A DNA stretch of 63,509 nucleotides, filler included, from Octopus bimaculoides (lineage: Eukaryota), in the NCBI RefSeq assembly GCF_001194135.2. It is 8 parts of 6 records of this genome, joined end to end, with 100 filler letters (N's around TTAATTAATTAA, not from the genome) between each part and the next. Parts side by side here need not be neighbours in the genome. Positions count along the whole stretch, not along the records: positions 1 to 13,484 come from NC_068985.1; 7 more parts are not named here. One strand, written 5' to 3'. The notes under the pieces are model-generated. The model was not told the DNA's origin and made no database searches. It saw only the letters and a list, made by a program, of their open reading frames with translations. Numbering within the stretch: the stretch's first letter is position 1; each line of letters opens with the position of its first letter. Of the stretch, positions 1,888 through 11,417 are shown in pieces. A program made the translations under genes and the position numbers.

Positions 1888-1925
1888 ACCTATTTATGCA
1901 GAAATTGGCTACATAGATATGGACA
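1888..1925 (+). CDS. Micro-exon (38 nt, phase 2 to 1) of a Tyr-motif-rich protein; encodes PIYAEIGYIDMD
   Basis: Strong acceptor ttttctttccttttcag and donor GTAAGT. It splices in frame to exon 4248-4278. Confidence 0.7.
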
Positions 1926-1979
1926 GTAAGTTTCGGTTCTCTCTTCATTGTAAGAAGCAAGTCCATTAAGTCCAACAAA

Positions 1980-3190
1980 TACATACACCAAACACTTTTG
2001 TTCCATTCTACTAATAAAACACTAGCCTCTACTCTTCTACACAATAAAGATATAAGCCTTTCTAGGGTTGGTTTTAGCATATCCCTTGAAAGGACTATAT
2101 TTTATTATGCTCTCCTCCCCATTCTACAATGCTGCAACTTATCCAACTCCATGTCATCTCTCGCTTGTCACTCTCCTGTCCACAAAATCTTCATTACTAC
2201 TCTGTTGATTTCTCTCACTCCACTTTTACAACAATTTCATTTACCTCCTGTGGAGGTGCAATGGCCCACTGGTTAGGGCAGCAGACTCGCGGTCATAGGA
2301 TCGCGGTTTCGATTCCCAGACCGGGCGTTGTGAGTGTTTATTGAGCGAAAACACCTAAAGCTCCATGAGGCTCCGGCAGGGGATGATGGCGAACCCTGCT
2401 GTACTCTTTCACCATAACTTTTTCTCACTCTTACTTCCTGTTTCTGTTGTGCCTGTAATTCAAAGGGTCAGCCTTGTCACACTGTGTCATGCTGAATATC
2501 CCCGAGAACTACGAGTACACGTGTCTGTGGAGTGCTCAGCCACTTGCACATTAATTTCACGAGCAGGCTGTCCCGTTGATCGGATCAACTGGAACCCTCG
2601 ACGTCGTAAGCGACGGAGTGCCAACAACAACAACAACAGCAACATTTACCTCCTACTTCTCCTGTCTCCTCCAACTCATGCATTATTGTTCATTCCCAAC
2701 CTTTATACCCCATTCACTACATCCACCCTTTAACCACACGGAATCTTTACAATTGTCACCTACCTCCCTTCTTTTTCATTCATTCCCCATTTCTCACTCT
2801 TGCAACTTCCATTCACCCACAATCCAATTCCTCTGTTCCACTCACTTCTCCTCATTTCCTACACTGACAGTCTACCCTGACACCTTATTGTTACTATTTT
2901 TATCTCTTTCCAGCTCCACCTGCATCACTTTCATCCTCTCTTCTAAAATGTGGGTAGCCAACTATATGTCATTTCTCTCTTGTCCCTCTCCTGTCCACTT
3001 AGTCCTCATTACTATTCTGCTGTTCTACCCTACTCCACTTTTATTGCATTGTCAGCTACTTCCTACTTTCCCTATCGATCACTTCCATCTCCTCTTCTAA
3101 AATGTGAGTTGACATGTTGATCTTCTACAGCAGAAAATCTGTTCTGCTCTGGCCCCTTCTCTCATACATTAACCCCTCGTTTCCTTGTAT
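1980..3190 (-). mobile_element. Highly degraded LINE (RTE-like) remnant interrupted by a SINE
   Basis: A purine-rich minus strand with an NPRKAYI fragment resembling the RTE C-terminal RGRPRKTYI motif. There is no intact ORF. Confidence 0.35.
2250..2642 (+). mobile_element. Full-length tRNA-derived SINE (family C) with (CAA)n tail and 12-bp target-site duplication
   Basis: It has a tRNA-like head with B-box GTTTCGATTCC and a (CAA)n tail. CATTTACCTCCT flanks both ends (2238-2249 and 2643-2654). A second copy lies on the minus strand at 37110-37470. Confidence 0.85.
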
Positions 3191-3289
3191 AAAGCTGACC
3201 CTTGGAGTTACTAGCTATGCAGGCTGTATGGCAACATCAATAGGGCTGGTGGATTGAATAAAGTACTCGGGACACACTGTAAAGTGGTT

Positions 3290-3432
3290 GGCATTAGGAA
3301 GGGCATCCAGCCACATAAACCATGCCAAAGCAGACACTGAAACAATGCAGTCATTGGACACATTGGTTCCTGTCAAACCATCCAGCCCATGCCAGCATGG
3401 AACGTCGACGTTAAAGGATGATGATGATGATG
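3290..3432 (+). mobile_element. RTE-type 3' tail fragment ending in (GAT)n
   Basis: GGCATTAGGAAGGGCATCCAGC...CCATGCCAGCATGGAACGTCGACGTTAAAGGATGATGAT matches the 3' end of the RTE copy at 30715-31800. Confidence 0.7.
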
Positions 3433-3769
3433 AAGTCATTTTGCTCAGTACTCTCTGTTCATACACACACACACATGCACACACAAACACACACACACAC
3501 ACACATGTAGACATGGTTATTTGTAACTTAATGGAAAAAAGTGTTACCTGATGATCCATTGTAGTTGAGAAATGTACTTAGAACACACACACACACACAC
3601 ACACACATATATATATATATATATATATATATATATATATATATATATATATATATATATATATATATATATATATATATTTGTACACAGACACACACAC
3701 TCAGGATTTAGATATGAGCTGAAGCAAACCTAATGTGTAACACAATTTGCTTCTTCAACCTGACAACAC

Positions 3770-7790: not shown

Positions 7791-7918
7791 ATAATCAAAC
7801 TTTTTACCACAAAGCCATGCCTGCCAATATAGAGGTGACTGTCAATTGAGATTTTTTTTTTCTTTTCTCTCTCAATTCATGTTTTCTCCTTACATTTAAC
7901 AAATTTATTTTTTTACAG

Positions 7919-7949
7919 GGACAAATGACCGCAAATCTACCGAGAATGT
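7919..7949 (+). CDS. Micro-exon (31 nt, phase 1 to 2), repeat 2a; encodes (G)TNDRKSTEN(V)
   Basis: Acceptor tttattttttttacag and donor GTAAGT. The downstream intron is homologous to the intron after 4278. Confidence 0.8.
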
Positions 7950-9771
7950 GTAAGTATGCAAAAATAAAATATATTTTCACACACTTTCCTTATATATATA
8001 TTTTTTCCTTTGAATCCATCTACCTGGAAATTTAGAAAGAGAAAAATATCTTTATTTTTGATAGTTTTGGGGAAAATTGAAAATAATTGTTTGTGTGGTC
8101 AAAGAATTTGTATAGCATTCACATCATTGAAGATACAATCACACTGCATAGCCAAATCATCTGTATATGGAATGTGGTGGGCACTTGTCTAAGTCTGAGC
8201 TAAAACAGTTCTTATAAATGAGAGCATTTATAAGAAGTCTTAAGAGAACAACATCAGACCCTGGAAGTAGGTTGAAATTTATCTCCTGGGCAAAAATGCG
8301 TTTAAAGCCAAACACACACACATTCACACACACATGCACAAGCACACACACACATGCACCAGATAATGAACCACTGCTCGGCGACGGCCCAATCCCTTCT
8401 TCATCAAGTGAGTGAGGAAACTACGAAAGTGGTGGTTTTTCACGCACGCACACAAATAACACGCATGTAAACAAACAAACGCACACACATGCATACACAT
8501 GCACAAACATACACACATACATACACACGTACAAACAAGTACATGCACACACACATTCACACACATACATACATGTATATACAGACAGATAATGCATATG
8601 AAGAGTTAAAACATGTAAGAAGTTAAAAACAAAGATTAAAAAAATTTATATCTTTTAAAAGTTGTTTTCTACTCCTAATGTTTCTCCAGGCTGTTGGATT
8701 CTTTTCTTTCTTGTTGTTGAAAAATAGATGGTTGTGCAAATGTTGTAAAGAATATTAAACAAGCAATCTTTTTTTAATTGTTTTCATTCACTTCAACTCA
8801 GATGTTTTAATTAATTCCTCACCTGCATTGCTCAAAGACTTTTATCAAATTCATATACATTGTAAAGTCTTCAGTAAAAATTACAATACTTACACACACA
8901 AACGCACACACACACACAGACACATGCACACATGCACATACAATACATATATCTATATATGTGTGTATATATATATATATATATATATATANNNNNNNNN
9001 NNNNNNNNNNNNNNNNNNNNNNNNNNNNNNNNNNNNNNNNNNNNNNNNNNNNNNNNNNNNNNNNNNNNNNNNNNNNNNNNNNNNNNNNNNNNNNNNNNNN
9101 NNNNNNNNNNNNNNNNNNNNNNNNNNNNNNNNNNNNNNNNNNNNNNNNNNNNNNNNNNNNNNNNNNNNNNNNNNNNNNNNNNNNNNNNNNNNNNNNNNNN
9201 NNNNNNNNNNNNNNNNNNNNNNNNNNNNNNNNNNNNNNNNNNNNNNNNNNNNNNNNNNNNNNNNNNNNNNNNNNNNNNNNNNNNNNNNNNNNNNNNNNNN
9301 NNNNNNNNNNNNNNNNNNNNNNNNNNNNNNNNNNNNNNNNNNNNNNNNNNNNNNNNNNNNNNNNNNNNNNNNNNNNNNNNNNNNNNNNNNNNNNNNNNNN
9401 NNNNNNNNNNNNNNNNTATATATATATATATATATATATATATATGTTACATATATATATGTTACATATATAATATATAGTACAACTCTGATTGTGAATA
9501 AATTGTGCTTTATATATATATATATATATATATATATATATACACACACAAATAGGTATAGCTATATATAAAGCACAATTTATTTGTGATCAGAGGTGTT
9601 CGTAAAGCAAGGTACAACTGTATTAAATGAATATGAGAAAGACAGTAGATAAAGTACAATTTATTTGTGATCAGAGTTGTTCAAAAACAGGTTGTACTGT
9701 ATATGTATAGGCGGTGCTCCAGCATGGCCACAGTCAAAAGACTGAAACAAGTAAAAGAGTAAAAGAGTATA

Positions 9772-10880
9772 TACTGGGTCATCCCATAAATAATGCACTT
9801 TTTTTATAGTTTTATTTTTCAAAATTAAGATAAACTAAGTTCATTTTTTATCAAAAATATACTCTCCTTCATTTTCTACAATGCTCTTCCATCTATCTGG
9901 TAGACTCTTCAAAAATTCGCTTGTCCGTGACAAAAAAATACTCCTTTTGTACTGTTATGACCTCATCTACAGAATTCATATTTTTTCCATCCAAATGATT
10001 TTGAAGACTGTGGAATAAATGATAATCAGATGGGGGAATGTCCAATGAATATGGTGGTTGGGGCATCGTTTCCCATTCAAACTGCTCCAGCCTTTGGAAT
10101 GTCATCCTCACTATGTGACTGAGCATTATCCTGATGGAAGAACACTTTTCATTTGAAACTAAAGATGGTCGTTTTTCTTTTAGCACTGACTTAAGTCACT
10201 CAAGCTGCTTGCAGTAGATCTCCTTTGTTATCGTTTGGTTTGGGTTTAAGACTTCAAACTGGATTAAATCTTTCATATCCCACCAAACAGATAACAACAC
10301 CTTCTGTAGGTGAAGATCTTGTGCCAGTGCCAGTGTTTTTCCTTTCCACTGTCTTTGGCATTTGACATTTTTATAGAGAACCCATTTCTTGTGACCAGTC
10401 ACTATTCGGTCCAAAAATGGTTCATTCCTGAGATGACGTGACAGCAAAGAAAGCACACATTCACTCTCTGCATGTGATTAGACTTGGAAAGTTTGTGAGG
10501 AACCCATTGACCCAGTTTGCTGACTTTTCCGATGGTATGCAGGTGTCAATGAATAGTTGAATGATCAAATCCAAGCTTCTCTGCTAGTCCTCAACAGTTA
10601 TGATGGGATTTCATTCCAGCAGGTTTTGCAGGACAACCTCATCAAGCTCTATAGATCTTCCAGAATGAGGCTCATCTTCTAGGCTGTAGTTACCAACTCG
10701 GAATTTCTGGAACCACTGTTGACACTGGCTTACACTTATTGTCCGATCCCCATTGTTTGATACTGCTTATTGTCCAATACTGCATTAATATTCCTCACAC
10801 TTTCCATGGCATTGTTGCTTTTATTTAACTCATAAATAACGCAAACTGTGCCAAATATGCTCATTTGCCACTTCCATTAC
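9772..10880 (-). mobile_element. Decayed mariner (Tc1/mariner, D,D34D-type) transposon
   Basis: Frameshifted fragments include QWFQKFRVGNYSLEDEPHSGR, GQWVPHKL, FLDRIVTGHKKWVLY, KVLLSVWWD and QPPYSLDIPPSDYHLF. It lies in the intron between repeat exons 2a and 2b. Confidence 0.9.
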
Positions 10881-11367
10881 AGCTTTGAAAAAATAATTGT
10901 TAAAATCGAACTGCACTCTTCAAAACTTGCACTAAGAATAAGTACAAGATATCTTTTGACCTTGTCACTACACAGTAATTTCCCTTTGTTTTTAACGATC
11001 ATTTTTCACAGGAATTTTCAATGGCTGGATAACTGAAGAGATGTTGGCGTGGGCTCCCACCCTGGCATCCGAAACTCGGAGTTTTATCATGGCTACTGAA
11101 TAAGTGTCACATATTTTTACAGATAAATTCCTCTATTTGCATAATATTGAGGTTTCTTTCTTTCTTTTGTTGTCCTTCCTGTCAAATATATATATGTATG
11201 TATGTATGTATGTATGTATGTATGTATGTATGTTTTTACATATGTAGATATATATGTGTGTCTGTGTGTATATATATATGTGTGTGTGTGTGTATGTAGG
11301 TAGGTATAATTCATCTTTTTATAGTTAATTTCATTGTTGTTAAGTGTGTGATTCATTTATCTTCCAG

Positions 11368-11417
11368 ATATTTAAACCCATTGTCAGTAAATTCCCTGAA
11401 GCACATTCAAAATGAAG
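11368..11417 (+). CDS. Micro-exon (50 nt, phase 2 to 1), repeat 2b; encodes (V)YLNPLSVNSLKHIQNE
   Basis: Acceptor catttatcttccag and donor GTGAGA. It is a close paralog of 4803-4852. Confidence 0.85.

Follow-up and report, generated by a model that had tools for sequence, protein, structure and literature searches.

PECAM-1 (CD31) and CEACAM1 are type I members of the immunoglobulin (Ig) superfamily whose tyrosine-bearing cytoplasmic tails are encoded by short exons, with exon skipping changing the number of motifs and canonical immunoreceptor tyrosine-based inhibitory motifs (ITIMs) recruiting SHP-1 or SHP-2. The tails of CD28 and ICOS are likewise short and unstructured; a Y-x-x-M motif suits PI3K p85 and a Y-x-N motif suits Grb2, both specificities falling on one tyrosine in CD28 (Y-M-N-M), which has a single Ig domain. 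A further group, Kirrel/Neph1/IrreC-Roughest, comprises Ig-superfamily adhesion receptors with five Ig domains, a tyrosine-phosphorylated tail and a PDZ-binding C terminus, and Neph1 has been reported to bind Grb2. Here, we describe a chain of five micro-exons in a 63,509-nt window of Octopus bimaculoides DNA (the whole stretch analyzed, with several genomic parts joined by filler). The micro-exons lie in its first piece, positions 1-13,484, and are coding exons 10-14 of an annotated, uncharacterized Ig-family membrane receptor gene. The encoded tail shares with PECAM-1 and CEACAM1 its short exons and skippable motifs, but it contains no canonical ITIM, has no detectable sequence relationship to either protein, and draws its cassette from a tandemly duplicated exon pair; by this comparison PECAM-1 and CEACAM1 would be functional analogues and not relatives. 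Unlike the CD28 arrangement, the Y-x-x-M and Y-x-N patterns of the octopus tail sit on separate tyrosines in separate exons, with no homology between the proteins. The octopus protein has neither the five Ig domains nor the PDZ-binding C terminus of the Kirrel family, and phosphorylation of its tail is only putative.

All five exons are on the plus strand, with coordinates counted along the whole stretch. Exon 10 (1888-1925, 38 nt; acceptor ...ttccttttcag, donor gtaagt) is entered in codon phase 2, encodes (E)PIYAEIGYIDMD with the motifs P-[IV]-Y-x-E-I and G-Y-x-x-M, and maps exactly onto residues 420-431 of the RefSeq protein XP_052823758.1. Module 1 is built from exon 11 (4248-4278, 31 nt; acceptor ...tttatttacag, donor gtaagt), which supplies its first half, (R)AKALKATQN(E), and exon 12 (4803-4852, 50 nt; acceptor ...tgttttccag, donor gtgaga), which supplies the second, YLSPDSVNSLKRIQNE(G). 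Module 2 has the same construction from paralogues of these two exons: exon 13 (7919-7949, 31 nt; acceptor ...tttttttacag, donor gtaagt) encodes its first half, (G)TNDRKSTEN(V), and exon 14 (11368-11417, 50 nt; acceptor ...ttatcttccag, donor gtgaga) its second, YLNPLSVNSLKHIQNE. Every acceptor consists of a pyrimidine tract followed by AG, and every donor is GTAAGT or GTGAGA. When exons 10-14 are spliced, two frames of the resulting 200 nt contain stops, and the third is open for 66 residues, PIYAEIGYIDMDRAKALKATQNEYLSPDSVNSLKRIQNEGTNDRKSTENVYLNPLSVNSLKHIQNE. Each 31 + 50 pair totals 81 nt with phase-1 introns on either side, and the E or V codon preceding the module tyrosine is divided by the internal junction (GA and G in module 1, GT and A in module 2). 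The initial annotation had placed five exons with canonical splice sites at exactly these coordinates in a single frame, and had described the pairs as symmetric phase-1 modules of 27 aa with the N-x-Y-L-x-P motif assembled across the splice junction; the sequence check and the rebuilt coding sequence of XP_052823758.1 agree with it on the exons, and the phases are as it claimed.

The host gene was identified with a profile built from the aligned translations of the two 50-nt exons (16 positions, YL[SN]P[DL]SVNSLK[RH]IQNE). Against 1.84 billion representative proteins, this profile gave one strong match (E = 1.4e-14, two matched stretches), the Octopus vulgaris protein CAI9722396.1, automatically named "kin of IRRE 1." Its C terminus, ...ENDEPIYAEIGYIDMDRAKALKATQNEYLSPKSVNSLKRIQNEGTIDRKSTENVYLNPLSVNSLKHAQNEALIG, is the window peptide with three substitutions and with all junctions as predicted. 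Searching with a longer isoform, together with cluster look-ups, added isoforms X1-X7 of O. sinensis LOC115211591, O. bimaculoides XP_052823758.1, Argonauta hians GAB1602869.1 and two older, truncated O. bimaculoides models. The O. vulgaris gene is annotated with two isoforms (CAI9722396.1/CAI9722397.1), and the RefSeq isoforms X1-X7 of O. sinensis carry the same exon junctions; XP_052823758.1 and these orthologues represent the same gene, recorded as computed models whose automatic names disagree. All residues of the window peptide recur unchanged in the tail of XP_052823758.1 (66/66). Its locus in assembly GCA_001194135.2 is CM046605.1:76,311,860-76,399,502 (L003), and the window piece is 100% identical to L003 58,099-71,582, corresponding to CM046605.1 ~76,369,958-76,383,441. 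Rebuilding of the 1470-nt coding sequence, in which AG/GT boundaries and exact translation were required, yielded 489 aa in 15 coding exons, with exons 10-14 falling exactly on the five intervals. Exon 1 (58 nt) encodes the signal peptide, exons 2, 3 and 4 (321, 279 and 321 nt) are three Ig-sized exons, exon 5 (108 nt) encodes the transmembrane segment, and exons 6-15 (25, 69, 50, 25, 38, 31, 50, 31, 50 and 14 nt) encode the cytoplasmic tail, of which the window carries the distal portion. These ten tail exons of 14-69 nt are spread over ~37 kb: exon 9 lies ~1.5 kb upstream of the window piece, past an assembly gap, and the 14-nt exon 15 ("APIG" and stop) ~6 kb downstream of it. A terminal "A[LP]IG*" exon was looked for in the window and not found. 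The initial annotation had called this a hidden gene, a description that fits only if one considers the open reading frame (ORF) track and the earlier O. bimaculoides models (317 aa and 131 aa), which lack the tail; the current RefSeq model of the same assembly contains all five exons.

The host protein is a type I Ig-superfamily protein with a signal peptide, Ig domains, one transmembrane helix and a tail of ~127 aa; O. bimaculoides has three Ig-like domains, and the longest isoform of O. sinensis has four. The N terminus is hydrophobic (MMLQQSIILLLFTVISYSS), and matches to Pfam Ig_3 (3.4e-13; 50.3 bits vs a cut-off of 30) and I-set (4.1e-10) both exceed the gathering score. The transmembrane stretch, VLTIGITCGVIVLILVTLIICCFWYF, is followed by SIRK and coincides with a helix at the matching residues of the AlphaFold model (411-442 of P0019). 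Mean pLDDT of this model is 47.5, with confident prediction only for the two membrane-proximal Ig domains and the transmembrane helix; pLDDT of the tail is <30, consistent with disorder, and the tail is predicted to be unstructured. Of the receptor or adaptor types to which the initial annotation had tentatively assigned the tail, the Ig-family option is borne out by the signal peptide, Ig_3 and I-set matches and transmembrane helix, while the MEGF/Draper and RPTP options are not what is present. A full-length protein search returned no homologues outside octopods, and the protein thus appears octopod-restricted in these searches.

Positions 1144-12004 of the window are collinear with O. vulgaris L002 99,936-108,860 at 88-94% identity, and all five exons keep their length, AG, GT and frame in both O. 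vulgaris and O. sinensis; orthologues of the 50-nt exon 12 retain the AG acceptor and GTGAGA donor. Between O. bimaculoides and O. sinensis, the 66 aa encoded in the window are 95% identical, as compared to a range of 74-88% in the Ig domains and to 79% in the proximal part of the tail. In Argonauta hians, a 38-nt exon (PVYEEIGYTVMN) and a 31-nt exon (PRTLRSTQNE) have the same sizes and phases, although the introns no longer align, and the third exon reaches an in-frame TAG (YLCPVSISSQTYKK*), at which the single module ends; no second module was found within 10 kb downstream. The three Octopus species each carry two modules and Argonauta, the other octopod lineage sampled, a single one; repeat count does differ between lineages. 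This distribution places the duplication before the split of O. bimaculoides from O. vulgaris/sinensis, and the second module appears to have arisen in the Octopus lineage or to have been kept only there (i.e., absent from or lost in Argonauta). The tail exon layout is alike in A. hians, O. bimaculoides and O. vulgaris, while the gene spans 15 kb (L004 10001-25102), 68 kb (L003 10001-77643) and 99 kb (L002 10001-109479), respectively, a difference attributable to intron growth through repeats.

The duplicated unit is a tandem segment of ~750 bp consisting of the 31-nt exon, an intron and the 50-nt exon. As delimited by self-BLAST, copy 1 (4223-4973, plus strand) contains exons 11 and 12 with the 524-nt intron between them, plus ~120 nt of the intron that follows. 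Copy 2 (7894-11748, plus strand) is stretched by microsatellites, a run of N, a mariner copy and a SINE-like insert (11452-11659); this insert is common to O. vulgaris, and the mariner copy is not. The aligned pairs are 4223-4654 with 7894-8354 (72%), 4772-4890 with 11337-11452 (85%) and 4884-4973 with 11659-11748 (86%). Within the second pair of exons, identity between modules 1 and 2 (4828-4895 vs 11393-11455) is uneven: the 3' half of the 50-nt exon is 92% identical and the 5' half 76%, and the adjoining ~43 nt at the start of the next intron are 81% identical (one 3-nt indel, two further gap columns). The high-identity block spanning the 3' exon half and intron start is kept in O. vulgaris and may represent either a tract of gene conversion or an element of splicing control common to both modules. 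Exon 8, which has the same length (50 nt) and phase, was considered as an older third copy of the 50-nt exon and rejected (identity 11/50; shuffle p-value 0.87).

Because phase-1 introns flank the 81-nt pair, it can act as a cassette. Isoform X5 of O. sinensis (XP_036359323.1, 570 aa) is isoform X1 (597 aa) minus the 27 aa of module 2, GTIDRKSTENVYLNPLSVNSLKHAQNE; equivalents of exons 13 and 14 are absent, the frame is kept and the number of sites is altered, as the initial annotation had proposed for skipping of an exon pair. Both inclusion and skipping forms are thus observed as annotated isoforms of O. sinensis, and on these models the pair behaves as a cassette. A 24-aa tail cassette, or one of the two tandem N-terminal Ig exons, is missing from other O. 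sinensis isoforms. The N-terminal Ig exon has been copied in tandem: O. vulgaris has three copies (L002 51567-54650), O. sinensis X1 uses two, X6 and X7 each use one or other of them, and the O. bimaculoides model has one. Through duplication and alternative use of this exon, the gene therefore diversifies its ligand-facing end as well.

Alignment of the Octopus and Argonauta tails shows the invariant residues (P, Y, E, I, G, Y, M and T, Q, N, E, Y, L, P, S among them) clustering on two segments, D-x-P-[IV]-Y-x-E-I-G-Y-x-x-M and L-x-x-T-Q-N-E-Y-L-x-P-x-S. Four SH2-type patterns, Y-x-x-M, Y-x-N, Y-x-x-P and Y-[AE]-E-I, are all present in the tail as patterns; Y-x-E-I, Y-x-x-M and Y-L-x-P do not vary between Octopus and Argonauta, and Y-L-N-P is confined to module 2. 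The initial annotation had overlooked the conserved Y-x-x-M motif, which reads GYIDM (in Argonauta, GYTVM). Direct reading of the tail found no canonical ITIM ([SIVL]-x-Y-x-x-[IVL]), immunoreceptor tyrosine-based switch motif (T-x-Y-x-x-[VI]) or immunoreceptor tyrosine-based activation motif (Y-x-x-[LI]-x(6-12)-Y-x-x-[LI]): position -2 is P in EPIYAEI, position +3 is M in EIGYIDM and P in both NEYLSP and NVYLNP, and Y-A-E-I is spaced from Y-I-D-M by only one residue. Among SH2 ligand classes, Y-[AE]-E-I is of Src-family/SHP2 type, Y-x-x-M suits PI3K p85, Y-L-x-P suits Crk, Nck and Abl, and Y-x-N suits Grb2; these specificities reportedly derive from peptide libraries (Songyang et al. 1993, 1994). 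In the mechanism that we propose, the tyrosines of D-x-P-[IV]-Y-x-E-I, G-Y-x-x-M and T-Q-N-E-Y-L-x-P would be phosphorylated by Src-type kinases upon receptor engagement and would then recruit SH2 proteins according to motif class. The Y-L-N-P of module 2 would also suit the Grb2 rule, such that inclusion or exclusion of exons 13 and 14 would add or remove one Grb2/Crk-type docking site. The chance that the conserved tail tyrosines serve as SH2 docking sites is about even. More tentatively, and on balance doubtfully, an octopod-restricted, fast-evolving Ig receptor may have gained a second Crk/Grb2-type site by duplication of a two-micro-exon cassette, with regulated skipping tuning its signaling, as an independent counterpart of the tail switching of PECAM-1 and CEACAM1.

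That the five intervals are exons of an Ig receptor tail carrying a duplicated module, with a docking role inferred for its tyrosines, is in our judgment the best overall explanation and a highly probable one, and several observations have to be set against it. All protein records are computed gene models (RefSeq XP_ entries, ENA/GenBank annotation), the Argonauta model apparently takes its name from the O. sinensis gene and may not be an independent annotation, and a literature search for the locus found no publication mentioning it. Between species, the exons are only slightly above their flanks in identity (191/200 vs 1640/1770), the same exon alignment containing four synonymous and three nonsynonymous codon changes. 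Between the modules, paralogous exon identity is 74-84% vs 70-85% in flanking intron, with ~14 nonsynonymous and two synonymous differences, and two of the tyrosine motifs also match endocytic sorting signals. The most radical alternative is that the exons are chance, untranslated pseudo-exons in an intron or repeat. Splice scores alone do not decide the matter because decoys reach similar values: with a simple splice-site position-weight matrix, exons 10, 12 and 14 are three of the top four plus-strand candidates, but exons 11 and 13 fall in the middle of the ranking, and decoys with comparable scores turn up on both strands as well as in a control octopus locus. Chance alone often yields open frames of 10-16 codons. 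It was evidence from outside the window, and not the window alone, that decided the question. A word-index protein search with the spliced peptide returned no candidate, which would favor pseudo-exons, but this was later shown to be a false negative when a full-length query retrieved the same proteins. The tool had missed the 67-aa spliced peptide even though near-verbatim proteins are representatives in the same collection, and short-query negatives from it are therefore not readable as absence. The occurrence of the peptide near-verbatim in annotated proteins of three Octopus species, together with conservation of exon sizes and phases in Argonauta, leaves a chance origin exceedingly improbable. 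Transcript support for the tail is likely in O. vulgaris, for which annotation combined Iso-Seq and RNA-seq via PASA/EVM and took alternative isoforms only from PASA transcripts (PMC10700109), and for which the protein evidence used predates the corrected O. bimaculoides model. The name given to the protein raises a different possibility, namely that it is a true Kirrel/Neph/IrreC orthologue working as a Kirre-type adhesion receptor. In favor are its type I Ig-superfamily architecture and the tyrosines of its tail, as well as the assignment of the name "kin of IRRE-like protein 1" by two annotation pipelines. However, its Ig domains number three (O. bimaculoides) or four (O. sinensis X1) and not five, its C terminus (...NEAPIG in O. 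bimaculoides, ...NEALIG in O. sinensis and O. vulgaris) is not a class I PDZ ligand (x-S/T-x-hydrophobic), and the searches found its homologues only in octopods. When all PDB sequences were searched with phmmer, the sole match was a weak one (OBCAM 5uv6, 5.6e-05), with no Kirrel, Neph or SYG-1 chain at E <= 0.01. UniProt labels two other O. sinensis isoforms of this gene "Soluble interferon alpha/beta receptor OPG204," borrowing the name of a poxvirus interferon receptor, and such conflicting names for isoforms of one gene mark both as best-hit artefacts. Orthology to Kirrel is very unlikely and the name "kin of IRRE" is not supported by these comparisons; both automatic names are misleading and should not be passed on.

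The remaining alternatives accept the exons and concern what they do. The tyrosine motifs could act mainly as Y-x-x-hydrophobic sorting signals, bound unphosphorylated by AP-2 mu2 and controlling endocytosis and surface level. Y-A-E-I and Y-I-D-M (Y-T-V-M in Argonauta) do match the endocytic consensus Y-x-x-[LIMFV], the hydrophobic residue at +3 is invariant across octopods, and the motifs lie in an unstructured tail far from the membrane, the usual setting for such signals. Against this, N-x-Y-L-x-P, the best conserved motif and the duplicated one, has proline at +3 and falls outside the sorting consensus, and the acidic residues and I/V before the first tyrosine suit Src-type kinase substrates. 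A predominantly sorting function seems unlikely on this evidence, and docking and sorting are not mutually exclusive. A similarly low probability attaches to the proposal that module 2 is a tolerated, near-neutral duplicate, spliced in through inherited splice sites with no specific function, the isoform without it being splicing noise or an equivalent form. The 31-nt exons are 74% identical with no synonymous differences, the 50-nt exons are 84% identical, and Argonauta works with a single module; as the modules diverged about as fast as introns, module 2 overall is not clearly under protein-level constraint. Nonetheless, its frame, both splice-site pairs and the core T-x-N-x-Y-L-x-P-x-S-V-N-S-L-K-x-x-Q-N-E are all kept in three species at ~8% neutral divergence, with only I/N and I/A changes, and no part of the protein is better conserved between species than the segment encoded in the window.

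The observation made from the sequence is thus confirmed and its interpretation largely supported, while the gene model was already known: the gene call adds nothing new, the exons already figuring in the RefSeq model for this assembly and in the annotations of two sister species. Raw sequence alone had sufficed for a correct reading of five exons of 31-50 nt, along with their phases and a cassette that can be skipped. The locus offers a compact example of short signaling motifs multiplied through duplication of a symmetric exon set, in an uncharacterized, lineage-restricted Ig receptor with a tail better conserved than its ectodomain. If the tyrosines are true docking sites, the gene would be a reasonable entry point to receptor-proximal tyrosine signaling in cephalopods.

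Intron 13 contains an assembly gap (8992-9416, 425 N) with (AT)n microsatellite on both sides, which is also present in the current chromosome assembly. The orthologous introns are gap-free and continuous (1160 nt in O. vulgaris and 1178 nt in O. sinensis, as compared to 3418 nt in O. bimaculoides), and the extra O. bimaculoides length consists of the mariner copy and microsatellites. Nothing suggests that an exon is missing in the gap, and the join of exons 13 and 14 is supported by the uninterrupted orthologous introns and by annotated proteins that join the two in frame. Mobile-element remnants in the piece comprise Penelope-like GIY-YIG ORF fragments, a LINE reverse-transcriptase fragment and a decayed mariner transposase, distributed among 87-662, 5365-5655 and 13369-13484 on the plus strand and 6126-6398 and 9893-10456 on the minus strand. 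The best named match of the Penelope-like fragments is an O. sinensis protein (84% identity); the mariner transposase matches Pfam Transposase_1 (E = 2e-14) and has no counterpart in the orthologous intron of O. vulgaris or O. sinensis. An O. sinensis locus initially reached via a transposon ORF was discarded as not orthologous, having only repeats in common with the window. No match was returned when a window ORF was looked up exactly or when metagenome DNA was scanned with the conserved exon/intron block, and Rfam and tRNA scans of the sequence returned only microsatellite artefacts below gathering scores (mir-297, mir-466, mir-3149). Microsatellites of (TA)n, (CA)n and (TATG)n type are dense, and a 15-nt tandem repeat, TCTTGTGCAAGACCC, is present in 3.9 copies (1097-1154; 832-987; 3607-3680; 7030-7143; 11189-11307). 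Intron 14 holds two head-to-head copies of a dispersed repeat (12127-12518 and 12788-13195; 85% identity), with arms of ~400 bp and a spacer of ~270 bp, which in the pre-mRNA could form a long double-stranded hairpin of the type that serves as a substrate for RNA-editing enzymes in cephalopods.

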